This document shows positions 480 to 62,610 of a DNA stretch of 64,000 bases, piece by piece. Position 1 is the stretch's first letter, and each line of letters starts with the position of its first letter. The position numbers and the translations under genes are program-made. Source of the DNA: Takakia lepidozioides (lineage: Eukaryota > Plantae > Bryophyta); contig CM060733.1 in the NCBI GenBank assembly GCA_030704615.1, forward strand, positions 1,364,001 to 1,428,000, read 5' to 3'. The notes under the pieces were generated by a model that was given only the letters and a program-made list of their open reading frames with translations, did no database searches and had not been told where the DNA came from.

Positions 480-3180
480 GTCAGCCCATCATAATCGAAA
501 GTCCCTCTCCAAGTTTGCTCTAAGCTTGGGGTCGACACATTTGCTCAAATCATGAGATGTTGGTACTTGTCCAAGAAGGAGACTTACAATCGCGTAGGAG
601 AAGGGTCGGGACACCTCAAACTTGTACAATGCTATCTTGAAAATCAGATGGCCTAGCATGCGTGCCTGTGCAACGCAAGTAAAACAAATAATATTAGCAT
701 TCAAATAACACATCTGGTGAGTGGTAGAATATAAAAGCTCAAGGTAGCAGCTGGCTGCAAGTATAGTGAACATGGAGATTTACCCTATCCAACTGAATAT
801 CGGGTCGGACAATTTCAGTGTCGAGTTTTACATGTAGAATTATCTTTTGGAGGTTGTTTGGATACTCGAAAATTGCATTGTAGTTCTGCAACACATAATA
901 AATTTCAGTTAACTTTGTAGGTATCTTTGGCTTTCTTTAGCTGAGTGTTGATCAAATTTGATTAGCTATAGGTTCAGATTCTTACAAATGTGATTGACCA
1001 GAACTGTTTTCATGCGTTAGTCAACCGCGTCAAAGGTATTGCTTTCAGCAATATATTGTCGCTTGAGTGGATGAAGTCCACCTTGGGCTTGTAGGAAGCT
1101 TGTTTGGAGACCACATATGAGCACCATTACTCTGTAAAAGCGGCAAGCTCTTTCCCTTGGTGCACCTGAATACACGTTATTTAGAATATGTTGCATAATA
1201 TGCAAGAGCTTCCTCTCCTAGTGGCATTGCAATCAGACCCTCTGTTTCTCAGTCCTAGGCATGCATAAAAACAACCATGTATACCTGAATATGAGTGTTT
1301 AGGATTGGTGAGGAGTCTAGGTAGGAGTTATAGGCTTTGAAGACTATGTGGAAAAGATAGAAGCGTTGATAGTCCAACAATGTTGAGACAATGCTTCATC
1401 AACTTTGACTCTTGCTTCCAACAAAAGCAACTCATCCTCCTCACCCTGCTTATGGGCTTGACGACACATTAGCTCCAATTGACTTTTCGAAAAAGATGTG
1501 TCTAGGTAGGAGTTGTAGGCTTTGAAGACTATGTGGAAAAGATAGAAGCGTTGATAGTCCAACAATGTTGAGACAATGCTTCATCAACTTTGACTCTTGC
1601 TTCCAACAAAAGCAACTCATCCTCCTCGGCCAGCTTATGGGCTTGACGACACATAAGTTCCAATTGACTTTTCGAAAAAGATGTGAAGGTAGACAATTGT
1701 AGCACCGCATCCCCACCATAGCATTCAAGAATATCCCGAACTACTTCCAATCGATGACAATTATGTGATTGCGCAATACATGCCTCAAACTTATCCCATT
1801 GTCGCCAAAACGACATTGCAACTGGTCATCTCGAAGCTCGAGGCAAACATCCCTCAGCTACTGGTCTAAACTGGTGTCTGATGTCACATCATGCTCAAAA
1901 TGCCTTGAAGGCCAACCAAAAAGATTTTGACCATTTCTTCTCGTAAGGATTCCGGTGCGTTTGCAAGGTGCTATCCATTACTTGCCGTTGCTCCAGGGCT
2001 ACAATATAAGCCTTATGTGCATTCAACCATGTTTCTGACAAGTCGTTTAGTTGGACATCCTCGGAGTTGTCCAAACGTGTAAGTTGTTGTGTCCCTACTA
2101 TTGATGCGCTTGCTGGAACAGTAATTGCTGATGCTGATGTTGTGTACCTGTTGTTGTCATCGTTGGAGTTGTCCGAGGTCGAGGACGCCCTCGCAGAAGA
2201 CCTTCATCAGGCAAAGGGTTTGAAATAGTTAGATGCATTTGACATGGAGGCCCAGTCGAAGAAGACTTGCAGAAAACTCAGCTCGGGCTACGATTGGAGT
2301 ACCTGTACGGGTAGCTAGGTGATTAGTACTCTTTGCATTTTATTTTATTTTTGCATCTAGCAAGCACAACTAGTAGTATAGTCATCATCAAAATAGTGCA
2401 GTGTGCTGAAATTAAGTAGTGACGTACGTAGTCAATAAATAAAGTGTACTCATCATCACTATCGTCATCTTGATCATGTTGTGCTGCCATGGGACTGTAT
2501 AGAGTGTTGCAATAGGTAGTAATGACAGCCCTCGGTAGTGTGGTGGGATCCGGAAGGTACACCACAAAGGCGTTGCTTGCCAATGACCCAAATAAAGATA
2601 TTGTTGTCCAAGTATATGGTAATAGTTGGAAGCTTCTACCAACTTTTGTACCTCTAGCTTTCTTTGTCCGTTTGTAGAATAAGTCTGAAACGGGCCTGAA
2701 CAGAACTGCAATGATTGAACTCTGGTAATGCTGCAAAAGCTTGGGCAATCTCGTACTCTACTGTGTGATGTGAAACTGGTTGAGGGTAGATAAAACCACC
2801 CCAGGGTGGTGTATGGGGCAACGTCACCAGCACATTAGGAGGCCAGCTAGCCACCACATGGATGGTCTTTCCATCATTACAAGTCTAGTGGATACTCTGG
2901 AGCATTGTGTAAATTGTTCTTGTGATGTTCCTTTGTGCGTTAATGGCCCTCCCGCGGGCTGCTTATTCACTGAGGGAGAAGGATGAGCTGCAATGCTGGT
3001 CAACATGGTCTTGAGTACATGTGTATGACATGCCTCGTCTGCCCGATGCCCCAAACCGAGGCGGGAAGGCAAAGGCTCGCCCTCGGCCTTGGAGTCCCAG
3101 GGAAGACATTCACCATAGCACTTGAAGCACGATTGTTTGGCAAATGTCTTTCCCCCAACCAATCATCCTCGTCTGACATT
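480..3180 (-). pseudogene. Decayed spliced gene with HECT E3-ligase-like motifs (possibly TE cargo)
   Basis: Minus-strand peptides GEEALA (~1200-1218), GAPRERACRF (~1135-1165) and LGHLIFKIAL..FSYAIVSLLLGQVPTSHDLSKCVDPKL (~510-660) resemble the HECT N-lobe consensus (GEEG.D.GG.RE; LG.AI...F...LLG...DL..VDP.L). Many stops and GT-AG intron remnants. The upstream portion is unidentified. Confidence 0.4.
1316..1685. repeat. 185-bp tandem duplication
   Basis: TCTAGGTAGGAGTT(A/G)TAGGCTTTGAAGAC... starts at 1316 and 1501; near-identical copies giving duplicated peptides in ORFs 1344..1565 and 1529..1816. Confidence 0.9.
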
Positions 3181-4199
3181 GAATTGTTTTTCTACAAGCA
3201 AACAAAGGTACTAGTGTCAGAGGTTTCTTTGAAGAAACTATTAGGATCTTTACATCACAAATTGTCGGCTAGATTCTCCCCTCAACATACATAACAAGGA
3301 TTAGTGCTGGAATGTTGTTTTATATTAGATGGAACTGCATTAATACTAAGGCATGCACACATTCTAATATTGTTTAGAAACAATTCCATAAGCTATCACA
3401 CGATCTATGTATGTAATGATAAGTGCATGTCAATATAGGTTTGATTCCTCCAATTTGTGTCAACACCTTGTTTGATTTGGACAAGCTCTCACAAGCAGAT
3501 GGATCAAAAGGTAAAATGATAATAATTACCACCATCAGTGGTTTAGGTCATTGCTGATTCATTATGTTAGATCTGTTGCTGCCAAGTTTGACATTTATGA
3601 AACATTACTGCAATCAACTAGTCAATTGGAGAAAATTCATTCTAAAGCTTGCTGCAACATTCTTTCAAAGCTGAGTAAGAAAATTGACCTCGACGAATGG
3701 AACATCAAGAAACCATGGGAACTTTGGGAACAACCATAGGGGACAAGCAAAGAAATTCCACTTCTTCGAACCAGAGGGAAGAAATGGCGAGTTCTGCTTA
3801 TTCGAAGACAAGATGAGCAATACATTCTCAGACGGTTTAATGAGGTATTTCAGCTTCTCTACTTGTCTGATTCAATTGTTTTAGGGTGGTTGAAGAATTC
3901 AGCTTTGTTATGTGAATCTGTGTTTATTGAAGAGTTTTGTTTGTTGCTTGATTTTCCAAAACATAGTGAGCGAGGAGATGTGGCCACAACCCCATGAATA
4001 AGAGAGCAATTGCCCCCGAATAGTGCGAGGCAGTAACCATGACCCTACATCACCTGTAATTCGCAATTGCTACATTCGTTACCTTGTGTCTGTATTTTGT
4101 TTGTGTGTGTTAGTAATGTCGAGTGTGATTAGGAGATTGCTTCATGATCTTCAGCTAAACTGTTGTGTGTTGGGACCTCCCTATAGGAATAGGCAAGAG

Positions 4200-5091: not shown

Positions 5092-6603
5092 GACTAGCAA
5101 TGAGATACAACTACAGTCAAACCTAGATAATTGTTATGCTCCAAGAGTATAGACTCTATAACTATTAGGCGGTTACATCAAATAACAGTAAAATAGGTTG
5201 AAATTTCATAACGTAACAATTAAAAATTTAACATTAAAATAGGTCCTTCATATGCAAGATAACATTTAGAAAATTGAAATCGCCATTTGAATAGTTCAAA
5301 TGACCATTTCAATATTCAAATGGGTCATTTGGACTATTCAAATGGCCATTTCAATATTGAATTTGAATTTGAATATAGTACCATTTTATTTTTATTTTTA
5401 TTTTTATTTTTTAAAAACCATATCCGAGTTCATATTTCCAGGTTATTGACATTCAGATACCATTGCTCATATCATTCCGAACCACCTATGCATATTAGAT
5501 TCGTACTTGAAATTCAGGGGCTGCATTATTGGAAAACCTACCTTAAAAAAAAATAGCACTGCATACCAGAACCCTTCTAGTATTTCCAATTCAAGATACC
5601 CGACCAACACTGGTGTTAACCTTACTTATCTGAGTGTTAAGTGTGTGTGTGACCAACTTTAGGGGCTATTATTCATGGAGGTGATTTATTAGTGGCCAGA
5701 ATGGATTACTCCTTATCTGATCCAACTAGTTTAGAGGTGTATATTGAATGTAACAATTACAGAGGTGTTTTAATAAAGAGGAGAGTAGGTATTCAATAAC
5801 AAATAACAAATAACAAATAACTGCACTGAGACTAGCAATGAGATACAACTACACTCAAACCTAGATAATTGTTATGCTCCAAGAGTATAGACTCTATAAC
5901 AATTAGGCAGTTATATCAAATAACAGTAAAATAGGTTGAAATTTCATAACGTAACAGAAATTTAACATTAAAACAGGTTCTTCAGATGCAAGATAACATT
6001 TAGAGAATTGAAATGGCCATTTGGATAGTTCAAATGACCATTTTGAACAATATTCAAATCGGTCATTTGGACTATTCAAATGGCCATTTCAATATTGGAA
6101 TGGGTCATTTGGGCTATTCAAATGGTCATTTCAATATTGAATTTGAATTTGAATACTAGTACCATTTTTATTTTATTACTATTTAAAAAAAACAATATTC
6201 GAGTTCATATTTCTAGGTTATTGACATTCAGATACCATTGCTCATATTCGGATTGATTTGTTGAAAACCACCTATGCATATTAGATTCGTACTTGAAATT
6301 CAGGGGCTGCATTATTGGAAAACCTACCTGTCTTAAGTAAAAATAGCACTGCATACCAGGACCCTTCTAGTATTTCCAATTCAAGATACCCGACCAACAC
6401 TGGTGTTAACCTTACTTAACTGAGTGTTAAATGAGTGTGTCACCAACTTTAGGGGTTGTTATTCATGGAGGTGATTTAATAGTGGCCAGAATGGATTACT
6501 CCTTATCTGATCCAACTAGTTTAGAGGTGTATATTGACTGTAACAATTACAGAGGTGTTTTAACAAAGAGGAGAGTAGGGATCCAATAACAACTAACAAA
6601 TAA
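5092..6603. repeat. ~738-bp tandem duplication, AT-rich, with internal palindromic subrepeats
   Basis: GACTAGCAATGAGATACAACTACA... at 5092 and 5830, colinear to ~5815 and ~6603; internal AATGGCCATTTCAATATTG-type units. Confidence 0.9.
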
Positions 6604-9600
6604 TAACGCTATTTTTGTCATTCTTAGTGTATACTAGGGTAGCATGTGCCGTTGGCCCAAGTGTCCAGGGTCATCTAAGTCCAAGTGCAGTCCCCTATGT
6701 ATCTAAAGACCTTCATGTTTGGGAGATCTACGCCTAGGGTAGCCTATGCCATTGGCCCATGTGTAAAGAATTGAAATCTAAGCCCAAGTGCAATCCCCTA
6801 TATATCCACGTCTCCTATGTCAAGGCCCATGTGTGAAGAATTGAAATCTAAGCCCAAGTGCATCTCCTGTGTATCCAAGTGTTTCTCTCATGTAGAGGTC
6901 CAAGTGCAATCCCCCGTGCATCAAGAGACTCTACAGTTTGGGAGATCTCTTTGTCATTGTTCCAACAAAGCCCATTTTGCTATTTTTGCAATCTCCCTTG
7001 TCGAGGTTTCCTATATTAAAATATCCACTTTGCTATTTTTCGCAAATTTCCAGCGACCAAAAGTACTTGAAATTCGAAATCTCCCACATGAACGGCCAAT
7101 CACTACTCCAGGAAAGCCCACTTTGTATTTTTTTGGAATTTCCAACGGCCCAAAGTACTTGAAATTCCACATCTCCCACACCGCAGGTCCAAAAATCATG
7201 AGACCAAGCCCGTGCACCCCTCCTCGTCGAGGGCTTTCCAACGGTACCAAACACCAAGGCTGGCCCCCGCGGTTCGGGACATCTCAACGTGACAAAACAA
7301 ACAAAACAAACAAACCAATTGGCTTCCTGCATGTATTGATTTTTTTCAAAGTAAGAAAATCATAACATTTATGATGCCGACCGAAGTTAGCCTAAATACT
7401 TAGATTACTGTCTATAAAGGATAAAAGTCCAAGCTATTTCTAGCGTTAAGGTAATTGTAGACCCGAGTGAATGCGTAGTCCTTGCCTAAAGGCCGCATGG
7501 CTCAATAAAGGCTTAGATTGCGAGTGTACAACTCGGTGGCATACCATATGTGAAATAGCAAAAAGACCATCACTATAGGCCCAGATAATTTGCTCTGTAG
7601 TACTGTAAAATGTCAGTTTTGGGCATGGCCACTATCATAGGCGACCTAGGCTTGAACCGGGGTTTGGACTCCTCCCGGGCTTGGACCCTGCCACCTTCCT
7701 AATGCTATGGATAGTGGCCGGAACTCTTGAGAGTGTCATTGGGAACTATGGGAAATATTTTCTAAAAGAATTTACGGGCAACTGCCCAGAAATGGACAAG
7801 GCGAGATCTGATTTAGTCCTAATTTCGAGGGCCACGATTTTGCCTCTCTCATCTCTGTCTCTTGCCTTGCCCAAACTGTTGAAGCCCGCGTGCGTCGATC
7901 CGAGAGTGTGTTCAATCCCCTTGCCAAAAACAACAACCTTCCATGTGGAACGGGCATGCTTCTCATTAGGGTGAGGTTCTCCGTGCAAAGAGGATTTTAG
8001 CTGAAAAATTGAATTTTTTTTCCTTTGAAGCTAAATGAAGGTTTTTGTCTCTTTTGCAGCTGTTTGAATCCGAACTGTTTGCACGACATCGTTATTGCAG
8101 TTTTTACACCATCAATGCAGCTTTAGTTGTACAAGCGCTGATTGTGAGAATTGTTTAGTGATTTCCGTCATCGACCATATGCAGAAAAATGCGTTTACGA
8201 ATGGCGACTATGAGGTATATGACTGGATGGAGGGCACTCAGTTTTCATGTTTGTAGAGAGGTGTGACATGTTGGCGATGTTGCTCGCATAAGAGATTTGG
8301 CATGTAGCGCTGTAGGTCTCCCTCTTTGGTTATTAGTACTATTTAGTATATTGCTCTAATGTCATGGTAGACAACTGCTTGTTGATGTTGCGGTTCTCAC
8401 ATACTCTATGGTGGGGAGAGGCAAAGAAATGTACCAATGGTTTTTTGTCCAGAAGTTCAGGTGACATGAACGTCGAACAGATAGTAATTATGATAATGCA
8501 AGCTTTTCTCATTGGAACTTTGAGACCATAGATCTTGCATCAAATGTAGATTTGGGCCCCAGTTCCTTTTTCATAGTGCTACACAATAAAAACCTACTTG
8601 TGTTTGGCCCTTGGCTTGCTCTTTGCTTTGGCCAAGAGAACGGTGAAGACCAGAAGAGAGTAGGCGAAGCGTGTTGTTTGTAATGTGTATTTTATTTTGG
8701 AAGACCAAAATAAGGAGAGACAAATACTATTGAACCATCATATGCAAATCTTTGATATACACCCTTAAGAGTTAGTCCATGTTGTGTATCAGTGTGGTAT
8801 CAAAAACCATCATGCAAGTACTAACCATTTGTTAGTTGAGTATTGCAGATGCCGTTTCAATATAGAATCATTCCACCCTCGCAGCAAAGATAGATTTCAA
8901 TAAGCCTCAAAATGGGCGGTATGTTGTTACTGCAGATTGTGCTTTGCTGATATTGATGGAGGAGAAGATGCTAGTTGCACTCTTTTAGTCTTTTTTTTGC
9001 ACTCCCAACATCACTTTGATTTTTGCATTTATTCTAAGTGTCATTTATGTGTAGAAGGGCACCTAGTAGCTCTTAAGGTTGTTAAAATGGGCTAGCAGAA
9101 CGCTAAGTAATTGTCGGTGTAGCTTCAAGCTGCAAACTATAAGGGGTAGCTAGAGGGTGAAAGCCTAAAATAGAAAAAATATCATTCTTTGCTCTTTTCT
9201 AGAAGTTTGACAAACTGAAAAGTTGTGGCCATTCTTGTATCTATGATTACTCTTGTCAAATTTATTCTATTTCTTGGGAAAATTGCAACATATGGATCAA
9301 CAATGGAACCTAAAGCGTGTCACTGAGAGTCATGTAGCATCTCTAGTTGGCTCCTATAGGCTTCATCACTTAGAAACAGTCAAAACTTGTAGTCAATTCA
9401 GCCCTAAAATAGGTAGATCAGGAAGTATATTCTCCCTACCGTAGTGGGATAGCCGGTTAGGCACTTGCCTGCCTAATAATTATTTTTGGGGCCATTTGGC
9501 ATTTAGGCACTTTCGAGATTTTGTTTTTTAAAGTTAGGCATCTTGCACGTGTAATTTTTCAAATTAGGCAACTAAAAATAATGATCACAAAATGAAAACA

Positions 9601-36074: not shown

Positions 36075-36930
36075 TGTTTGATGCGCATTCTTCAAGGAAC
36101 TCTATGATGTTGGGCATAATAAAATGGTTGGGATATTTCATTCACTACTTACATAGGTCATAAGTCACTTGTACACTTTCCCATATTTTTTGGTCCATTC
36201 ATACTGAGTAGTATGTTTAGTACACCGCTAGCAAACTCTCTACCCTAAAACCTAATTCCAATGTTTGATGCTTATTTAATTTATTGCTTCCAATTTTGGG
36301 TGCGGTCGAAGTGCTGGGATATTTTATGAATTGTTCTAGGTCCATGTAAAGCCTCAGATTCCATAATTGTTTGTCCATTACAGTTCTCTAAACCTTAAAC
36401 CCTAAGCCCTTAAACCTAACTCCATTGTTTGATGCGCATTCTTCATAGATTGGATACAATATGTGGTTGGGATATTTCATTCACAAATTTCGTAGGGGAC
36501 AAGTTATCTGTACCATTTCCCATGTTTTCTTTTCCATTCACACTGAGTACTGTGTTTAGTACCCTAGCAAACTCTATACTCTAAAACCTAATTCCAATGT
36601 TTGATGCTTATTTAATTTATTGCTTCCAGTTCTGGAAGTGGTGGGATACTTCACGAATTGTTCTACGTCCATGTACAGGCTCAGACTCCATAATTGTTTG
36701 TCCATTTACAGTTTTCTAAACTCTAAACCCTAAACCCTAAACTATAAACCAAACTCCACTGTTTGATTCACATTCTTCATAGAAATTTGGATACAATCTG
36801 TGGTTGGGATATTTAATTCACAAATTCCATAGGTGACAAGTCATCTATACACTTTCCTATATTTTCTTTTCCATTCATACCAAGTACTACATTGTTTAGC
36901 AAACTTCATACCCTAAAACCTAATTCCAGC
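36075..36930. repeat. A-B-A-B-A higher-order tandem repeat (~160-190-bp monomers) with CCCTAAA motifs
   Basis: Monomers start TGTTTGAT at 36075, 36262, 36426, 36598 and 36760, alternating ..GCGCATTCTTCA and ..GCTTATTTAATT types. Confidence 0.8.
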
Positions 36931-39900
36931 AAGTTGGTTCAATGACTTTATAGGTGAGAATCTAGAGAACACTCTTCCACTATATGTGGTTGTCATATTT
37001 ATGAATGATCTCTAAATATTTTAAAACATATCAATTCCAATGTTTGATTGACATCCAACCTTATTCCATTCAACGTTTTAATCCATCAATTGAAAACTTG
37101 CAATACATTGGTTCATGGTATTACTATACTTTAAGCATGGTATGGATGTTTACTTTTCATTTGTATATATTATCTTCTTGAATCATATGTTTATGCCATA
37201 CATTTATCAATTTATTAATAACTTCACTCAATCGATCTTATATTTATAATTTTCTGACGCAAATTCGACTTATAATTCGATGTCACACGAATGGAATTGT
37301 GCAACATAAAGTTAAATGACTCAATACTCCATGGTATTATTATTAATACCCGAATTAATTTTAATTATGTGATATATTAAGTTTGGTCCGGATTTAAGCC
37401 AAAAGTCCGGAATTACTTAGAATGTGTTAGGTCCTCCGCGCCATATTCGCCACTAGAATTTAGGAACACAGACATATCAAAATTATTGTTATTGTCAAAA
37501 CTTGGAAGATCATGTCTCGAACTTGATGGTACAGGCCAAAGAATTCTCAGTATCACGAGACATGATAACCTACAGGGGCTGACTTTTCAATGCGCTTGTT
37601 TAGAACCCGAGGTGGACTCTCAAGTCTAGAAAACTCAAATGAAGGTTGCAAACTCTCAGGATAGTGAGATTCAACGAGACTAGGAGCAACACAAACAAAG
37701 TATGGATTCGCACGGGGATTCCTAGCAACATTGCCAACGCTAGCCCGAGAAACATGACCAGGACTTGTGATTTTTCGCTTCCCTTTCTGACCAGTCAATG
37801 TGGACACGAATTCCAAAAAACACAGACTGACGTCCACAAATTCTACTCAAAAGCACTAAACAGGGGCTGCAAATGCAAGCAAAGCGACAATATAACAGCA
37901 GCGTAGAAACACAAAGCCAAAACACAACGAAGCAAAAGACGCACAACAATGGAGGAGAACAACGGAGCAGAGAAATCGTAACTGTGGGGCTCTTTGTTCA
38001 ACCTTGCAAGTGTGTCTTGTGGTCTCTATCTGGTTTACCATTTGGCTTTTTGCCACCTGCCCATTTTCTCACACCATCTGACGACATCCGGATCTTGGGC
38101 GTTCCTTTTGGCACCACCTCATTCACTTCAACTTTTCTGGAAAACACACTTCAAGAGGACATCTCCCATTCTGAGCTCCTTCCTAGGCTTGGGGTGTCGC
38201 GCACCTCACTTCAATAAGCTCCCCTTCACGTTATAGTTACTCGCTTTGATGCGCGCGCCTAACTCCCAAACTGGCCGCCGGGCCAACTCGGAGCTTCGGC
38301 TGCTTACCGGGACATAACGGTCCCTTTTTGCTCCTCCACAAGACCCTCGCTCACTTTGGGCCTAGTGGAAATTCCCTTTGGTTGTTGGCAGTCCGGAACA
38401 GCTCCCCACACCTTGGTTGCTTTCCGGCTCGCACGCTTACTCACTAGTTTTTGGTCACCAACGGGCTTGTACCGTTCTCGGGGTTACTACTCCCTATATG
38501 TACTTCTGTGACTGTCCGCGGGGGTTTCACAAACAACACCGTCCTTTTATGGCGAACCACCACGAAGACCCTTGACTCCCAGTGATGAGTCGCGGTGAGT
38601 TTTGGCGCACCCACCACGGCCCCAATGGACCGTGATGAGTCCCAAGACTCCCCACGACTCCCACCACAAGGTCTCCGCCCCATTAGAAAAAAAAATGAGG
38701 TCAAAGAAAGGCTGTCCCATGTTCAACTTGGCCCCTATAGCCGCTCAAGGCGGGCAGAGACATTTCAAATATCCGTGGTCGATTTGAACGGCCAGCGTGG
38801 CAAAATTGGTTCCACGTATGGCGTTTCCACCGTGACGATGGCAAAAATGATTCCACGTAAGATGTTTTGGCGTGCTTCCGCGCCGGGTTCTGGCGCGTTT
38901 TCTCCCGCCGGGTTCGCGGGCTTCTTCCCACACTCGTTTCTTCCCCCTAGTTCTCGCAGCGTTTCTTACCATCTTGTACTCGTCGTTTCTAGCAGTGTGC
39001 GTCGACACCCTGAAGCTCACGATCATGTCCTAGAACAGGTGCTACTTTAATCTTGTTCCTCATATCAAGCGGTTCAATATCATCATACACTTGTTGTACG
39101 TTTGGCAAACGGTCCTCCAGAAGGTCACCTTTATCCTCGTGATGGTTGCTAGATTCCATAATGAACTAGCAGTCTGAATTGTTGATCTTTGGCTGAGTGT
39201 TGAGTGCGGTCTTTTCCTCAGTTGGTCTAGACAGCTCTTGGAATCAATTTAAGTCCAAGTTTTCAGCTCCTCATCCCTAAACAATCACATTTGTGTGTGG
39301 GACAACTAAAGTGAAGTTAACTCTTGTCAATGCGATGGCAGTGGCCCGGGAGAGAGAGATGGCAGTTACGTACAAAATGATAAAGAGTTCATTTATCATG
39401 TGATGACTGGCAGGGCCAGCTGAGCTTTGCAGGCTGGCGTGCCGATGACGGTGCTGTTTCTCGTCTGGTAGATGTTCATTGCAACCTTCGGGAACTTAAC
39501 ATGTTAGGCTTTCTTTTAATATACCTCAGCTTTGCTTACATCTTGAGCTTCGCTCTGGACATGTATAATCATCGTTGTCAAAACAAATTAGGAAGTGTTG
39601 CAAATACTTTCAGGGGATATTACATCATGTACTTGTATTGTTTTTCCCTCTTCATGGTACGAATGCAGAAAAGAATTAACCCTGGTCATACGTTCTATCT
39701 AGTGCAGGACGGCACTGAAGCCTGGCAGCCATGTTTGGAGGCGAAACTGTGAGGTTGGACCTTTTCTCTTGATTTCTTCCACTGCCAGTTGCACTGCAAT
39801 TTGAAAAGGGTGTGCACGCTCATGCAAGAGTGTTCAATTTGTGTTGTAGAGGGAAAATCTTGCGCTCATCTGGTAGATGTATTTGGATATGAGACTAGTC

Positions 39901-40546
39901 TTCCATGTTGCCCTTATTGAGACTGCTTTTGTCTCTTTTTCTGGGGGGTTTTCAGGGAACTGAGAATAGCATGCACAGTGGCACAGGTGGATCGTGAAGG
40001 TGGTGTGAGTCCTCGCATCTCGCCTCTGGCTCAGGTGAGTCTCTTCATTTTGGTGTAGGAATGAGGACACACACACATAAGCTAATAGGGGAGAGAAACA
40101 AGGGGTTGGCAATGGGTTATATGCAAGTGACAATTGTCAAAAGTATGTTCATTGTGGGTGATGAATAGGTACGAGATGTTGGGAACCTGTTGACAAGAGT
40201 AGGTCTTGCACTGCCTGCAGTTGATGTGGACGAGTACACTGTGATACCTAGTAACTCTAATTGATTTGGATTGTTGGAGAAGCAAGCCATTTGTTATGTC
40301 TTGCATTATACATGCTACCTACATACAGCACAGACCGTCATTCTGCTTTGGAATATATGTGCTTCAGTATTTGTGTGTTGCCAGACATAGGCATCCTGGA
40401 ACAAAGTTAAGAACAATAATATCGAGTATCAGCGGGATTAGGGAAGTGAGACAAAGATAACGATGTATCCAATATTTATAGAATTGGACTCATGGTATTC
40501 CTAGTCAAGGTGTAATGTCCATGCAGCTTGGTGGTATGAAGGGCGG

Positions 40547-40822
40547 GTGTACAGTATGGTGACATCGGGTTCTGTTGTTCACGACAGGACTTATGAGGTA
40601 TCTGTTGGCAATTTTCCAAATTGCATATGCCCGGACTTCCAGAACACTTTATCAAGCTCTATTGGAAAGAAACCCAAATTTGTCCCGTGCAAACAACTAT
40701 ACTACATCTACATTTACGGGATGTTTTGTGATCCTCACCGAGACACGTGCATTCACCAGTGTACAATGGGTCCCACTGACATTCATACACTTCTCCAGCG
40801 TGATAGGATTACTGAAATGTGA
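40547..40822 (+). pseudogene. SWIM-type zinc-finger domain remnant
   Basis: YEVSVGNFPNCICPDF...KFVPCKQ fits SWIM Y.V......CxC.DF..CxH (H changed to Q). The upstream frame is interrupted by stops. Confidence 0.7.
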
Positions 40823-40951
40823 GGTGTTCAGAAGGAGTTGGATTCTTTGACAATGATTCCACTTTGTTCAATGTAATGTTTTTAACATGTTCTATTTCTG
40901 TTTTGGCTAAATCTGTTTCGGTTTGTTTGTTTTGGGGTTGGTGGTTTTTCC

Positions 40952-41656
40952 AATTAAGATGTCGTTGACGACACCTTAATCCACCCACCTGCACACGCAC
41001 TGCCTTCATATCTTTGTTGGATTCATATTTTTTGGGTTATTTGGGTTTTTTGATGAATTGAAATGTCGCAAAAGGTGGTGGGAAATAAGATGTCGTTGAT
41101 GACACCTTAATTCCTCCAACCTGCACATGCACCGCCGTGAAAGTTTTGTTCAGGTGGTCGGAATTAAGATGTCGTTGACGACATCTTAATCCCCCCGACC
41201 TACATACGCACCACCTTGAAAATTCTGTTGAGGTTGTTGGAATTAAGATGTCGTTGACGACACCTTAAACCCCCCTTCACACGCACCGCCTTCAAAGCTT
41301 TTCTGGATTCATTTTTTTCTGGTTTTTTGGGTTTTTCCATGAACTGTCATATTACAACAAATTGTGGGAATTAAGATGTCGTTGACGACACCTTAATCGC
41401 CCCGACCTGCACACGCACCGCCTTCAAATTTTTGTTGGATTTCTGTTTTTTCCATTTTTGGGCCATAATCTGAAAAGACGTGGCAGTAGCTGGTGGGATT
41501 TAAGATGTCGTTGACGACACCTTAATCGCCGCGACCTGCACAGGTGTCGGCTTTGTAGTTTTGTTGGATTCAAATTTTCTGGTTTTTTGGGATTTTCCAT
41601 GAATTGTTTGTGGCAACAGGAGGTGGGAATTAAGATGTCGTTGACGACACCTTAAT
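40952..41656. repeat. Array of seven 29-bp imperfect palindromes (AATTAAGATGTCGT-TG-ACGACACCTTAAT)
   Basis: Copies start at 40952, 41083, 41162, 41241, 41369, 41498 and 41628 (periods 131, 79, 79, 128, 129, 130); 0-2 mismatches per core. Confidence 0.95.
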
Positions 41657-44600
41657 CCCCCCCCCCCCCCCCCCCCCACCTGGACACACACCGCCTTCAA
41701 AGTGTTTTTGGACTCAATTTTTGGGTTCATTGTTTTTTGGAGAAATGTTTCTGCGATTTGGTTTTGTCCTCCACTTCTCATGTTCTATCCTCCTCCCTCC
41801 TCTGCAGCCCCACCCCCATCGGAAGAGTCCATAGGTAACTCAAATTTTACTCTGTATGTAATTGCCTTGTAACTTCAGCAGTTTCCTTCAAGTTCTCTCA
41901 AAGTAAGTACTGCCAAGATCAGCCGACAAATCTGAAATTCAAGACACACTCGAGATGCAATTGCTCCACGTGAAACAAAAACGAAGTCATGGTTCATCCA
42001 TTTCGCTCATTTCTCATCCAACAGTCATCCACCATTCATCCTTTCCACTTTTTATTCATCCTGAAACCATTCATCCGTCGGCTTTTTCATCGCACATTCG
42101 TACCTTACGGTCGTCATGGAGCTTGGATTGTCCCGTCGGATGGGGTGTGCATGCGTCCGTGCATTATAGTTTTTGTCCACGACAATAGGCTCCCATTCAC
42201 TAATTTGCTCACGCTTTGAATTTGCTCACGCTTTAGGGATTCTGCTCACGTTTTCCACTTTAAGCGTGAGCGTGCTCACGTGAGCTGCTCACACGGTAGC
42301 TGCCCTCCACATTGAAAGCCTGAACATATCCCCGAATGTCATCCATTTGCTTCAAATTCCTCATCTTGTCCCGGGCGAGCCAGGACGCGTTAAGGGGCAC
42401 AAACTGTCTTTTTATAAGTTCCTTAAACCCACTCCAGCTCAAGGTTTCTGGGTTTGGACCTTGGTCATGAAGGCGTTTCTGCCACCATTTGTTGAGCATA
42501 GCCCCTAGGTGGGAGCCACTTCCACCCGATCCTCGTCACTCAACTTGGCCGCCCAGAAGTATTGCTCTAGCTCCAAGAGCCAGGTGTTGAGTGCCTTCCG
42601 ATTTTGGACGGCCTCGAAGGTGTCGGGTTCCTTAGGCTTCACCTTAAACTTTGCCCTAGTGGAAGTGGCATTAGCCACCCTCATCACGTCTTTCAACGTC
42701 CCGCCAAACTGCGCCAACAACCATTCCCAAAATGCTGTAGGCATGGGAGACATTTGTTGGTCTGGCGGAGCCTCTGGGAAGTCCTCGGGCTCCGACTCCC
42801 CAAATTCCTGCCGTTCTTGAGCGGCCTCGCTTTCAGAAGCATAAATCGCCTCTTCCAATTGCCGCTTCGGTGACACGTCGCCCCCACCGGACTCACTAGG
42901 ATCATCATCTTTCGGGCCGTTCCGCTTTCGCTTTGTCTTGCCCGACCCCATATGAGGCCGATCTCAAGGACGATCGCGTACTGAACTCTAGGCTCTGATA
43001 CCAAGTGTCGCGCACCTCACTTCGGTAAGCTCCCCTTCACGTCATAGTTACTCGCTTTGATATATACTTTTGTGACTGTCCGCGGGGGTTTCACAAACAA
43101 CACCGTTCTTTTATGGTGAACCACCACGAAGACCCTTGACTCCCGGTGATGAGTCACGGTGAGTCTTGGCCCACCCACCACGGCCTCAATGGACCGTGAT
43201 GAGTCCCAAGACTCCCCATGACTCCCACCACAAGGTCTCCGCCCCATGGTGAGTCCTATGCCACCCCCACTAAGACCCACTAAGCTACCACCACCCCTCG
43301 TGGAACCACCGCCACCGTAACCCGGTGTGCGGGGCTCCACCTAGTGAGTGCCTTCGCCTCCTTGAGTGCCTTGGGCACTCAAGGGTGCTTCAGCCCCCGT
43401 ACCTATTGTTGCCACTGCCCCCACCACAGGGGCAACCCCTCTTGTGTCCCGACCCCCTGCCCTCGCGGCAAATGGCCGCGACATGGGGATGTACAGGTAG
43501 CCTATGATATTCTCACAAGGTGTTTCATTCAATGACCATTGTACCATTTACGGTCTTTTCCACCTACCGCTGAATTTCTACAGTCCCTGTCGCAATTTGA
43601 TGCTCACATTATGGGGGTTTTTGGTCATTTACAGGGGCCCGGTGCTCTGGATGGTTCCCAGGGGATTTACCTCGGCAAAAAGCCACCTAACCTGTGTCCG
43701 CTGGCGGGGTGGGTCTACTCTCCACTGCCACCACTGCTCCCTGTGCTTTCCTTGGCAATTGGGCTCTGGTTGCTCTAGCCCTCGCGTCTCAATTTCTATG
43801 TGACCAGCGGCCCCTACTCATGGATGACATTGCTCACGTGGATAACGGTCCACTCTCATTCCAACAACATCTCGATCCAATCTGCACGGGACCTTCTTCA
43901 TCCATCGGTGCGGGCTTGCCTTCCGCCATTTGAGCAGTTGGTTCCTCAGGGCTCGGACCATCTCCAAGTGACCATCGTGGATCGCGTGCACCAACAAACC
44001 TTTTCTAGCGTGCTTTCTGCTGCATCTTCTGATGTGCATTGTGTCAGGCTCTTATCTTGCGCAAGACCAGGGGCGGGTGAGTGGCTTATAGCAAAACCCA
44101 CTATCACACTGTTTCGTTTGTCATCTCCAATCTTTGCCACGGCTCTCCGCATTCGTCTTGGCTTACCACATCCTTCTGTGCTTGGCTTACAACGCTGTGT
44201 TTGTCACCAGCCCATCTGTTCATCTCCTTCGTTGTCCATGTGGAGGAGATCGTACAACGACTCATGATGTTGTGCGGGATACCGTCAGTCGTACGCCTCA
44301 GCCCACTCATCGGCGCGTTGACATCGTCTTATCTCGAGATGGTTTGCGCACCTTTGCAGATGTTGTCATTGCCAATCCCACTCGATCCGACTTACTTTCT
44401 TGCTCGGCCTCTTCCCAAGGCATTGCCGCTTTGATTGCTGCACAGACCAAACAACGAGACTATCAAGACCGTCATCCCACAAATGCGTTCCTTCCACTGG
44501 CTGTAGAGATCTTGGGATGTCTTCATCGTCAGTTCGACGACTTCCTTTGTACTGGTGCTCATCATGCTGCTCAGAACAAGATCAATGGCATTCCCCATGC

Positions 44601-45295
44601 TTCCGTCTTCGTAGTTTTCTATAGACAATGGGTTTCCGTAGCACTACAGAGGGCACATGCTATGTCGATCTTGCATCGGGCTATTGTAGCTAGCATGGCA
44701 TCGTCTCATTTTTCTGCTCTTCCCGATGTCACACCCATTTCTTTGTTTGATGTGATTCAGTTGGATGGGATGATCACCTGGTTTGATTGGCTTGCTCCGC
44801 TTTCTTTTTCATTTCTTTATGTTAACTCTTCCCTTGCTATGGGAACTTTCCATCCTTTGTACAGTTACCTCATGTCAGTTTGTAAATAAAGCTTTACAGG
44901 GAGACATTTCACATACATTTTGAAGGGTAGGGTTTGGCTAGCAGATTGGTACAACTTTTACAAATGTCAGTGGAGGGGTGGCTGAGAGTGACAACATCCC
45001 ACTATGGCCCAAGTCATTTGGTGTGTAAATGTATAAACATTCGATATCATGTCCCTGTGAGAGTTCTCTCTTTGGCCTTTGTACTCATACAACCATGTTG
45101 TAGTATTATACAGAGCCGGTGGCAAAGTGTAGTAAGGTAGTGTTTCTTTTCTCCTTCTGTCCGTGCTTGAAGGAGGGGGAGGGCCCATGTAAGTAGGTAG
45201 AACATGGAGAGTGATAGTGTCATCACACTTGAATCTTACTTTTTTCTGGAGGCTACTGTGAATATGTGCTAAAGTGTTGTTACATTGCTTTACAG

Positions 45296-46919: not shown

Positions 46920-49900
46920 AACTGACAACTGCACTGCTAGCATCACCATCGCTACTCATGGGTAAGAGACCAAGCGGCCCAACTGTACAGATGTTCAAAT
47001 TCTCCTTTCGCATAGTTTCTATGGCGGGAGCCTCTAAGTCGTGGAACGTGTTGACTAGAACCCACTCAGAGTCATGCATAAGAGGCGTTTGCTGCGTGAT
47101 CACGAACCGAATAATATAGCTTGAAAAATCGTGTGTGAGAAGGAACGAGGACAGGTCATCAACACGCGTTAGTGGTGACATCCCAGGCAAGCAGGTGACC
47201 ATTCGCGTACGGGCTGCTGACTCCTCGATACTCAGTTGTTAGAATTGAGCAAGAACATGAACAAGAACTAAAACTAAAACTAAAACTCTCCTCCCAACCA
47301 TAGAAGCCACCATCATACTCTTACACTTAGACTAGTGGCTTCACCCCCGAGTTTGTACAAGAAGGTCTCTAGAAAGTCCTACTTGGTCACTTCCACTTCC
47401 ACTATGGTGACCATCCACCTTCTAGCCATTCACCTTCCAAAGGTGAGTTAAACAAGATAGTCTCTTAGACTTCTAAACCTTTGGCCTTCAAGACTCTTAG
47501 TCTTCTAGATATGTTTAATTACTTCCAACACTCCCACTCAATTAAATCATATCATTGAGCTACTTCGTTTGTCTTTGGAGAAGAGACACCAAGTAAGGCT
47601 GAACACTTCATATGTTTTGTTTGTAGTAGACTCTTCATCAAAACATCCGCAACCATATCTCCTGTAGCACAATAGATCATCTTGATCTCTCCCTTGCATA
47701 CAACTTCCCGTATGTAGTGATGTTGCACTTCAATGTGCTTCGTCCTTGAATGATACTTCGGATTCTGACTTAGTGCAATTGCACTTTGATTGTGACAATA
47801 GAGAGTCGTAGGTAGTGATTGGAGATGATCCAAATCTCCAAGCAACTTCGGTAACCAAATAACCTCATTTGTTGCTTGTGTAATGGACATGTATTCAACT
47901 TCTGTTGATGACAACGCTGTTGCAACTTGTCGTTTGCTAGACCAAGATATAGCTCCACCTGCTAGGAGAAAACAATGGCCTGAAGTTGATTTTCTACTAT
48001 CAACGTCTCTTGCCCAGTCAGCATCAGCAAACCCCAACAAACTTGGATCTTCCACTCTCTTGTAGAGTAGACCAGAGGTTGATGTTCCTCTTAGATATCG
48101 AAATATCATCTTCACTGCTTTCCAATGGATTTGTCCGGGATTTGAAAGAAATTGTGAGACCACTCCTACTGAATGTGCAATGTCTGGCCTAGTACAAACC
48201 ATGCAATACATCAAACTGCCGACTGCGCTTTGATGAGGAGTTTTCCTCATATCTTCTTGCTCTTCTTGAGTCTTAGGTGTCATATCCTTCGTAAGTTTCA
48301 AACCAACTTCGAGAGGAGTTGATGTTGGCTTACTCATCTCCAACTTAAATCTTTGTAGAATTGTCTCAATGTATTATTGTTGATGCATGAATATTGTATG
48401 GTTCACTCGATCTCTGCTGATTTGAATACCGAATCTCACCCATGTCAGTCATGGCAAACTCAGCATTCAACAGTGCTTTGGTTTCTGGCAACAACATTTG
48501 ATGATCGTTGGTGACAATGATTGTGTCATCCACATATAGAGCTATGACCATAAATTGCTCTCCCATCTTTTTCACATAGATGTTTGTGTCAGCAATGCTT
48601 CGCTCAAATCTTGCCTTTAAGAGGTAAGCATCGATCCTAGCATACCAAGCTCGAGGACTTTGTTTGAGTCCATATAAACTCTTTTGCAGCTTATACACAA
48701 TATCACTTCCTCCTTGTACAAACCCTTCAGGTTGTCTCATGTAGATCTTTGTCTAGAAGAACCATCTCCATCCTAAACTTCCAGGTTTGATAGTTAGCTC
48801 CATTGAATCGATCTTTCACTCTCACATCTAATGCATCGTCATAGACATAGAAGGAGGATTGCTAGAAGACGACGCTCCAGCCATAATCAAGTTCTCTCAA
48901 TCTCAACTACCAACTCTCACCTAGAGAAGAATGGCTTTGATACCATGTTAGAATTGAGCAAGAACATGAACAAGAACTAAAGTCTTAGACTAAAGCTAAA
49001 ACTAAAGCTCTCCTCCCAACCATAGAAGCCACCATCATACTCTTACACTTAGACTAGTGGCTTCACCCCCGAGCTTGTACAAAAAGGTCTCTAGAAAGTC
49101 CTACTTGGTCACTTCCACTTCCACTATGGTGACCATCCACCTTCTAGCCATTCACCTTCCAAAGGTGAGTTAAACAAGATAGTCTCTTAGACTTCTAAAC
49201 CTTTGGCCTTCAAGACTCTTAGTCTTCTGGATATGTTTAATTACTTCCAACATCAGTGAAGGGCGTACAGATTGATCCAAGGGAGGGATAGATAGAGAAG
49301 AAGTTGCAGAAACTAATGGAGATGGTAGGGGCAACAGGCCCTCCGCAACAAGCGTGGGAATGTGTTCAGTAACATACAGGGTGATAGCGGATGGTGGGAC
49401 AAATGTTGCAACAGGGATGCCCAAGGTTTTGGCTGGCTCAAGTACGCATGTCATGATCATATCACGTATGAGGCACATGACAGGAGAGTGCACGATCAGT
49501 TTTTCCAGGAATTCATGAAACACAGGCGTGAACGCTTCCAATCCCGAAATAAGCCCAGGGATGTTAGCTGTCCGGGGGTGATCTTCTGGTAATCCATCTG
49601 GTAGCCCCACAAAGTGAATTCGTGCATCTAACCTGCCAAGGCTCAAGATTGAGCAGAAATGAGCTAAAAGATTCGAGATCAATATACACCAAGTTCAGTC
49701 ACAGCTCCCAGGTATTAAAAACCGACATATAATATGAAAATTGAAAGCTTGCATCAATGATATATCCCATATGAGACATTGAGAATGTCGAGCGTTGTTT
49801 TCAATATGAATGCGCCTTGGTTATCACCGTCAGAAATTGTAACGTGCTTGTGATTACACTGTCCACAACAAGCTTGGTTTACAAGAGTAGTGGCCGGCCC

Positions 49901-62242: not shown

Positions 62243-62610
62243 AGCATACAATTTTCAGGCCAAGTTGAATAAAGGCAAGCTTGCTGCAATTGACCCCAAT
62301 AATTCAGAGTAGTTTGACTCCCAAAACCATCCAGGGGTTTAAAGAATTCAGCATACAATTTTCAGGCCAAGTTGAACAAAGGCAAGTTCTGCAATTGACC
62401 CCAATAATTCCTAGTAGTTTCACTCCCAAAACCATTCAGGGGTTAGAAAAATCAGCATACAATTTTAAGGCCAAGTTGAACAAAGGCAATCTTGCTGCAG
62501 TTGACCTCAATAATTCGTAGTAGTTTCACTCCCAAAACCATCCAGGGGTTAGAAAAATCAGCATACAATTTTCAGGCCAAGTTGAATAAAGGCAAGCTTG
62601 CTGCAATTGA
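62243..62610. repeat. ~105-bp tandem repeat, 3.5 copies
   Basis: AGCATACAATTTT(C/A)AGGCCAAGTTGAA at 62243, 62350, 62454 and 62560. Confidence 0.92.

Follow-up and report, generated by a model that had tools for sequence, protein, structure and literature searches.

A palindrome array beside the remnant of a Mutator-like transposase gene in the moss Takakia lepidozioides

The stretch of DNA analyzed here, referred to throughout as the window, comprises 64,000 nucleotides from the moss Takakia lepidozioides (positions 1,364,001 to 1,428,000 of the forward strand of contig CM060733.1, GenBank assembly GCA_030704615.1). It contains, in the midst of the long terminal repeat (LTR) retrotransposon and long interspersed nuclear element (LINE) debris of a plant genome, the last codons of a transposase gene followed by a tandem array of seven near-palindromes. 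An earlier note on the window, made from the sequence alone, had described a CRISPR-like array of hairpins directly behind an open reading frame (ORF) with a SWIM zinc finger, and had singled it out as the best candidate for an undescribed system. As will be described below, the locus is instead a fragment of a dead transposon. The fragment itself is a fossil of moderate to low interest, and the transposon family from which it comes merits a proper description.

The gene remnant and the array behind it

The remnant was recognized by its protein homology. In a tblastn comparison, window positions 40541-40804 match residues 400-482 of the transposase ORF of contig L001 (56% identity, E 2e-28), and nothing else in the window matches that ORF. 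L001 is a contig of 9 kb on which the transposase P0001 is encoded; its element was assembled a second time as L002. When the 91-residue ORF of the window was used for a phmmer search of 1.84 billion representative sequences, 106 relatives were found, the best of them being P0001 (58% identity, E 7e-25). Several of these relatives are gene models of 440-480 residues, and the matched stretch lies at their extreme C-terminus. The start of the window ORF (40547-40822) is an artefact of the ORF finder; the real protein homology extends over 40541-40819.

The 91-residue ORF has no Pfam match, SWIM included. Pfam does recognize the SWIM domain in the relatives P0001 (21.2 bits) and P0061 (22.2 bits; the cut-off is 19.6). 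A C-terminal SWIM finger (CxCxnCxH) is common in plant transposases of the Mutator-like element (MULE) type. The zinc ligands C388, C390, C405 and H407 are invariant across ten relatives (alignment A2). The window copy reads CKQ in place of CKH, and this loss of the CxH histidine accounts for the missing Pfam call and means that the finger in the window is broken. The SWIM ORF of the earlier note thus turns out to be the part of a transposase that forms the C-terminal SWIM end in relatives, but its start is not genuine and what is left is a remnant with Q at the place of the histidine.

The gene breaks off at 40541. Contigs of other copies start or diverge at exactly this position, and the one RNA-type contig that includes the right side carries 264 unrelated letters upstream of it. 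The left flank (40300-40541) is itself repeated and apparently transcribed: RNA-type contigs match it at about 94% identity up to 40541 and then pass into unrelated sequence. What comes after this point in other copies of the left flank is absent from the window, arguing that the junction arose by rearrangement and not by a clean insertion. The window copy is 5'-truncated at 40541 and inactivated, a fossil without present function.

A short non-coding spacer separates the stop codon (40820-40822) from the array, the first core beginning 130 bp past the stop (Table 1). The core of the array is a 29-nt near-palindrome that occurs in seven plus-strand copies across 40952-41656, each with 0-2 mismatches; from 100 shuffles the number of matches expected by chance is zero. 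Tandem Repeats Finder and a repeat finder gave start-to-start spacings of 131, 79, 79, 128, 129 and 130 bp. When the seven units are aligned with MAFFT, their linkers prove to be about 50 or about 100 bp long. The long units carry an additional T-rich module (about 50 bp), and the linkers of both length classes are homologous to one another (about 80% identity). The earlier note had correctly described the seven cores with their mismatches, the two classes of related linkers, the distance from the stop and the perfect 13-bp stem of copy 3. It was less accurate for an extension of the stem that it reported in most copies: the G-rich/C-rich outer stem is present in single-copy folds of copies 1, 2, 3 and 6, but it is only partial in the others and absent from the consensus structure of the seven. 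Core copy 7 is directly followed by a run of 21 C (41657-41677), compared with 6-7 C in the other copies, and contigs of the DNA run are seemingly cut at this run.

Table 1. Features of the window and palindrome clusters of contig L001
Feature	Position	Strand	Remarks
Mutator-like transposase remnant (SWIM zinc-finger end and stop), last ~88 codons	40541..40822	+	tblastn, phmmer, alignment
Non-coding spacer, transposase stop to array	40823..40935	+	read directly
Tandem array	40936..41775	+	seven units of 131, 79, 79, 128, 129, 130 and 164 bp
Array unit layout	40936..41775	+	29-nt palindromic core, then conserved C-rich/ACCTGCACACGCAC-type flank, then T-rich linker
Core copy 1	40952..40980	+	0 mismatches
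Core copy 2	41083..41111	+	2 mismatches
Core copy 3	41162..41190	+	1 change, making the 13-bp stem perfect
Core copy 4	41241..41269	+	1 mismatch
Core copy 5	41369..41397	+	0 mismatches
Core copy 6	41498..41526	+	1 mismatch
Core copy 7	41628..41656	+	0 mismatches
Possible 3' non-coding continuation of the element	41988..42290	+	short repeated TTCATCC and TTTGCTCACG motifs; assignment weak
LTR-like piece	38196-38683	-	contains a 245-bp insertion
gag ORF	42951 to 42260	-	Pfam Retrotrans_gag, E 7e-7
Initiator tRNA-Met primer-binding site	43004 to 42988	-	LTR retrotransposon
LTR-like piece	43008-43245	-	LTR retrotransposon
L001 palindrome cluster 1	885-1716 of L001		7 copies, just downstream of accessory ORFs
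L001 palindrome cluster 2	3607-3927 of L001		4 copies, between divergent accessory ORF and transposase
L001 palindrome cluster 3	8811-9016 of L001		at least 5 copies, to contig end

The cores are far better kept than the sequence between them, as the earlier note had also claimed. Mismatched cells number 5 of 203 in the core (about 2.5%) and 119 of 580 in the rest of the unit (about 20%; Fisher p 9e-12), and a comparison with the proximal flanks alone (75 of 400) gives p 1e-9. Because one duplication history is common to all columns of the unit, this gap reflects either real constraint on the core or its strong homogenization.

The array is not confined to this locus. Contigs of a DNA run and of RNA-type runs were aligned to a stretch of 2,001 letters around the array, and 929 contigs of the species' DNA run match it. 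Their summed depth is highest on the core-bearing bins, with the maximum in the bin 41372-41438, which holds core copy 5. This high contig count and the depth on the cores imply that the array family is highly repeated in the Takakia genome, and the SWIM piece is likewise high-copy in the DNA run. The exact 25-nt core has no match among the JGI metagenome contigs.

The element may extend beyond the array into the region 41988..42290. One DNA contig of another copy links a core directly to position 41988 and onward (joint 40982 to 41988, one side consisting of only 29 letters), and a run of TTTGCTCGGA-type motifs past the array of L004, a distant relative introduced below, resembles this part of the window. 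Between the array and this region lies a 205-bp piece (41784-41988) with about 89% identity to the middle of contigs of 716-816 nt from two RNA-type runs (depth about 612), and the matched contigs have unrelated sequence on both sides. It has the appearance of a fragment that was captured or inserted from a highly expressed gene or a small element and that is distinct from the array.

The hairpin form of the units had suggested that the array might give rise to a transcript from which small or guide-like RNAs are released by cleavage at every hairpin, in the manner of a CRISPR array or a microRNA (miRNA) cluster. Every unit can indeed be folded as a single-strand hairpin (z-scores -1.4 to -5), and Rfam returns matches to miRNA precursors, but at 21-22 bits these fall well short of the gathering scores of 67-99, and no Rfam match to the array reaches its gathering score. 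The stems also lack the mark of selection on pairing: compensatory changes occur in 0 of 11 stem pairs, the covariation term is +0.31, and an A/C mismatch is kept in six of the seven copies. To our knowledge, stems of 13 bp are too short to be Dicer substrates. The array is essentially uncovered in the RNA-type contigs, two runs placing a single 34-nt piece on it, although this is a weak argument because contigs cannot show absence. With homologous linkers, no cas genes and a eukaryotic setting added to these results, processing into RNAs is extremely improbable, and we reject an miRNA cluster or other structured RNA on the pairing and Rfam results. A true CRISPR array, which the earlier note itself had ruled out, is rejected as well. 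Like CRISPR arrays, the window array has partly palindromic repeats that are about 29 nt long and follow at regular intervals; unlike them, it has linkers that are about 80% identical and not unique spacers, no cas genes, no leader and no evidence of transcription, and its neighbors in this plant genome are gag, LINE-like and copia-like ORFs. The comparison with the hr origin/enhancer arrays of baculoviruses was likewise abandoned, there being no viral context.

The transposase family and its arrays

A word-index search uncovered at least 323 homologues of the transposase without a Pfam domain or a name; a word search with residues 340-446 of P0001 returned only P0001 itself. The catalytic core was examined in the relatives, the window copy being without that part. 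It consists of D188, D254 (66 residues apart), C283-x2-H286 about 30 residues further on, and the glutamate of an NLAE motif that starts the next exon (alignments A3 and A2). The order D...D...CxxH...E defines the transposases of the Mutator superfamily, of which IS256 is the bacterial branch. All ten of the ten best embedding neighbors of the core carry PF10551 (MULE). An AlphaFold2 (AF2) model from 41 sequences has a predicted local distance difference test score (pLDDT) of 75.6, and only this model was used in the structure search, an earlier model from 5 sequences (pLDDT 44.8) having been discarded. Its structural neighbors in the Atlas are MULE clusters, and its only significant match among solved structures is the transposase of ISCth4, a member of the IS256 family (probability 1.00, E 5.7e-4; PDB 6XGW, 6XG8, 6XGX). 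No solved structure matches the clade's catalytic core better than that of ISCth4, but the identity is just 10-11%, the template modeling (TM) score is about 0.3 over the whole model, and this bacterial insertion sequence has neither a SWIM finger nor arrays. Based on the motif order, the embedding neighbors and the predicted fold, we place the transposase family in the Mutator superfamily as a divergent clade.

The transposase of the closest relative is longer than its SWIM-ending ORF. Two further ORFs in other frames lie upstream of that ORF in L001, and together they make up a transposase of about 1,100 residues. Ahead of the core there is a Cys/His-rich ORF (5469-6128 of L001) with homologues in 36 loci, which receives no name from Pfam or from a PDB sequence search. 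Mutator transposases with a zinc-finger DNA-binding domain of the WRKY-GCM1 type have been described (PMC1702500); in L001 and its relatives, no ORF receives a Pfam assignment to a MULE, ParB, methyltransferase or WRKY/GCM domain. The family is a large Mutator clade that Pfam does not recognize, with members in plants and in metagenome assemblies associated with plants (probably mosses).

Arrays of palindromes are also found with the transposase genes of relatives. In L001/L002, the closest relative (58% identity), an array of a 30-nt palindrome with a 42-bp period begins 200 bp past the stop of the transposase gene and is cut off by the contig end. This is one of three clusters, with 16 sites in all, that are distributed around both genes of L001 (Table 1). 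The consensus of the L001 palindrome and the window core have the centre CGTTGACG in common, and overall 19 of 38 aligned positions are identical. The distant relative L004, which comes from another sample, has a 31-nt palindrome of unrelated sequence, repeated five times at an 84-bp period from about 390 bp past its stop. The same order of gene, spacer and array is thus found in three lineages (the window, L001/L002 and L004), which, together with the common centre motif, supports a physical and evolutionary link between the array and the SWIM-ending gene.

Further palindrome-bearing arrays, with periods of 121-136 bp, lie inside L058, L039, L031/L028, L055 and L087. Those of L058 and L039 adjoin a homologue of the L001 accessory ORF (see below). 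The array of L087 (5878-7619) is located 2.4-4 kb upstream of an intact transposase and consists of about 12 units of 121 bp, each with a perfect 22-nt palindrome centred on GGATCC; L087 is an ENA assembly whose contig stops inside the gene. In the 3' array of L001 (8811-9016), the palindrome centre (GCGTTGACGC) has TG/CA in place of its CpGs (GTGTTAACAC and similar), and the upstream clusters (885-3927) keep the CpGs. This may reflect differential methylation decay among the arrays of one element.

The recurrence of the arrays bears on two alternative views of the one in the window. The first is that it is a functionless minisatellite, in which a unit with a chance palindrome was tandemly duplicated and the core stayed conserved through recent duplication, gene conversion or the effects of a hairpin on replication. 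Such a view would suit a window copy that is dead, units that are young enough for 80% identity, a stem without covariation, and the presence of tandem repeats at many positions in all related loci. Nonetheless, it is distinctly improbable: core and remaining columns have had the same duplication history and yet differ in mismatches (about 2.5% against about 20%), lineages with palindromes of unrelated sequence have their arrays in the same position, and contig depth across the genome is highest on the bins that hold cores.

The second view is that the array is an internal or 3'-untranslated tandem repeat of the non-autonomous LTR retrotransposon that surrounds it, and that its position next to the SWIM end is accidental. 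The array does lie between two LTR-like pieces, and on the minus strand it is downstream of the tRNA-Met primer-binding site and the gag ORF of an element without pol. In addition, tandem repeats of this kind are known from plant Ty3 elements. However, the succession of SWIM stop, spacer and palindrome array occurs without any LTR element in L001/L002 and L004, and the centre of the window core is common to the L001 palindrome. An origin within the retrotransposon is very improbable.

The palindromes as candidate protein-binding sites

To the following explanation we give a probability of about 0.6. The sequence 40541-41775, perhaps to about 42290, is the 3' tail of a dead, 5'-truncated Mutator element, and the palindromes in working elements of the clade are most likely multi-copy sites for a dimeric protein encoded by the element, with the transposase as the favored candidate. 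Iterated sites for an element-encoded protein were among the functions proposed in the earlier note, and this proposal remains the best reading, as relatives carry palindrome arrays of their own at the same place. If a dimeric protein encoded by a transposon binds to the element's DNA, its sites would be expected to take the form of a long conserved palindrome in many copies within the non-coding parts. The data show the repeat and the selective conservation of its core, its link to the transposase end in three lineages, the superfamily of the transposase and the truncation; that the palindromes bind protein, and which protein they bind, is what we infer. The tail holds the last codons of the transposase with the inactivated SWIM end, a short spacer and the 3'-proximal palindrome array. 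In a living element, transposase subunits would load in numbers near the element ends and at the promoter. The array in the window is an inert relic that was multiplied through tandem duplication of units of 79 and 130 bp. The transposase is favored as the binder because the palindromes of L001, clustered to either outer side of the gene pair and at the shared promoter region, fit the pattern of subterminal repeats.

Arrangements of this general kind are known from other plant transposons. The subterminal regions of En/Spm (CACTA) elements carry 12-bp motifs bound by TnpA, and those of Ac/Ds elements carry hexamers. In En/Spm the sites are found in both subterminal regions and over the promoter, and in both systems the overlap with the promoter couples transposition to epigenetic state. 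The putative sites described here would be comparable in being multi-copy sites for an element protein, placed in both subterminal regions and partly formed as inverted dimers. However, En/Spm and Ac/Ds belong to other superfamilies, and their motifs are much shorter and form no regular tandem unit.

Within the Mutator superfamily, the Muta1 element of Aedes aegypti likewise has a short tandem motif in multiple copies near the element end (PMC5499845, PMC5225508). A higher copy number of the Muta1 repeat leads to more transposase binding, cleavage and excision, and the terminal motif is a short imperfect palindrome (PMC5499845, PMC5225508). With the subterminal repeats, transposase binding and, in yeast, excision are increased, and cleavage in vitro depends on them (PMC5499845). 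Muta1 differs in having nine 12-bp direct repeats with 3-4-bp linkers inside a terminal inverted repeat (TIR) of 145 bp, whereas the putative binding sites of the window clade are palindromes of 29-31 nt that are spaced 42-136 bp apart over 0.3-1.7 kb, and in L001 they are also located between and beside genes. The earlier note had recognized that its case for a new system would fail if the array proved identical to subterminal repeats of a classified transposon. This is true in part: the locus is a remnant from the Mutator superfamily, in which such repeats are known (Muta1, PMC5499845), but neither the clade nor its long palindromes were found described in the full-text literature searched. 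The array is of a known kind, the transposon cis-repeat array, and it is set apart by the length of its palindromes, by their regular wide spacing and by the Pfam-unrecognized clade to which it belongs.

Several results weigh against this explanation. Even at an E-value of 10, PF10551 does not match the transposase core. One of the L001 palindrome clusters is internal to the element. The similarity between the window and L001 palindromes is only marginally significant outside the 8-nt centre (p 0.04 in a permutation of the arms only). A strict scan (arms of at least 11, at least 3 copies) found no family of long palindromes in 80 metagenome-derived relatives, which are mostly decayed, AT-rich and probably moss DNA; thus, long palindromes are not universal in the transposase family. 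The contigs L003, L005, L006 and L087 stop within or shortly past the gene and do not cover the downstream array region. Tandem repeats are common in the non-coding DNA of plants, and the arrays in the relatives are judged without a matched control for their frequency. For this reason, the link between array and transposase was rested on the three cases of gene, spacer and array and on the common centre motif. Finally, TIRs, target-site duplications of 8-11 bp and element termini were not found, with only one end possible in the truncated window copy, no inverted partner within the window and no examined locus spanning both ends, so that a subterminal position of the arrays is not proven.

The evidence from L001 also allows for a different binding protein. 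Divergent from the transposase, L001 has an accessory ORF (2945-3811) with a DGNHR motif, and its embedding neighbors are DUF3723/ParB_N clusters. The palindromes could be sites for this ParB-like protein and not for the transposase, serving either as parS-like loading sites or as methylation targets for self-marking. We consider this unlikely, but the placement of the sites lends it some substance: four L001 palindromes lie at the 5' end or promoter of the accessory ORF and seven just downstream of the accessory ORFs, and palindromic arrays adjoin the homologue in L039, L058 and L067, where one is detectable. Furthermore, the sequence GTYRAC fits 15 of the 16 L001 site centres and 6 of the 7 in the window, and short symmetric motifs like this one are of the kind recognized by restriction-type methyltransferases. 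On the other side, the recognition score of the embedding assignment is below the reliable range, and the accessory ORF has no Pfam match at an E-value of 10 and no PDB sequence match. No ParB or methyltransferase domain is detected by Pfam in the L001 ORFs even at the same E-value. Palindromic arrays occur without a detected ParB-like gene in the available sequence of L004 (a short contig), L087 and L055, and the window has no trace of such a gene. In fusions with methylases, ParB N-terminal domains are usually without the helix-turn-helix by which parS is read. The co-occurrence of a ParB-like ORF with transposase and palindromes is confirmed only in L001, and weakly in L039/L058/L067.

The likeness to the bacterial parS/ParB system, as generally known, is limited in other respects. 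Several palindromic sites near a gene with a ParB-like N-terminal domain are found in L001, itself a weak assignment, but the host of the sites is a eukaryotic transposon, there is no ParA partner, the sites are twice the length of parS, and Pfam gives no ParB match. A more specific version of this idea, and one that we hold to be quite unlikely, is that the GTYRAC-centred palindromes are recognition sites of an accessory protein of the ParB-like/DNA-amino-methyltransferase type, with which the clade would mark its own DNA (for example with N6-methyladenine, 6mA) or spread a ParB-like protein from parS-like arrays. If true, this would be a case of transposon-borne epigenetic self-marking in plants that would let the element escape or steer host silencing, and the window would contain a fossil array of such sites.

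Whichever protein is involved, members of the clade carry regular arrays of unusually long, lineage-specific palindromes, and in some cases a gene for a ParB-like accessory protein as well. Should the transposase be the protein that binds the palindromes, as we favor, they would provide a natural series for studying end recognition in Mutator elements, in which the site differs and the architecture is the same. If they serve the accessory protein, they would point to a DNA-marking system encoded by a transposon. In annotations of the Takakia genome, such arrays should be masked as transposon sequence and not recorded as CRISPR-like loci.

Neighboring sequences

The LTR retrotransposon around the array is represented by pieces without pol on the minus strand (38196-38683 and 42260-43245; Table 1), and a run of T is found instead of a polypurine tract upstream of the putative 3' LTR. 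Two plus-strand ORFs that resemble the C-terminal part of a LINE reverse transcriptase (38020-38190 and 43800-44889; no Pfam match) flank this element, and they appear to be parts of one non-LTR element that was split by a later insertion.

Elsewhere in the window, a hairpin-rich stretch of about 740 bp is duplicated at positions 5092-6606 (94-97% identity), and nested within it are inverted repeats of 41 nt that derive from a TTCAAATGGCCATTTGAA-type palindrome. Tandem repeats were found at 62243-62610 (about 106 bp, 3.5 copies), 36111-36888 (about 337 bp, 3 copies) and 1310-1679 (185 bp, 2 copies). An ORF on the minus strand (47552-48343) resembles, by eye and with no Pfam match, the C-terminal part of a Ty1/copia polyprotein. 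It is flanked by direct repeats of 264 nt with 98% identity (47267-47530 and 48989-49252), which are probably young LTR pieces.

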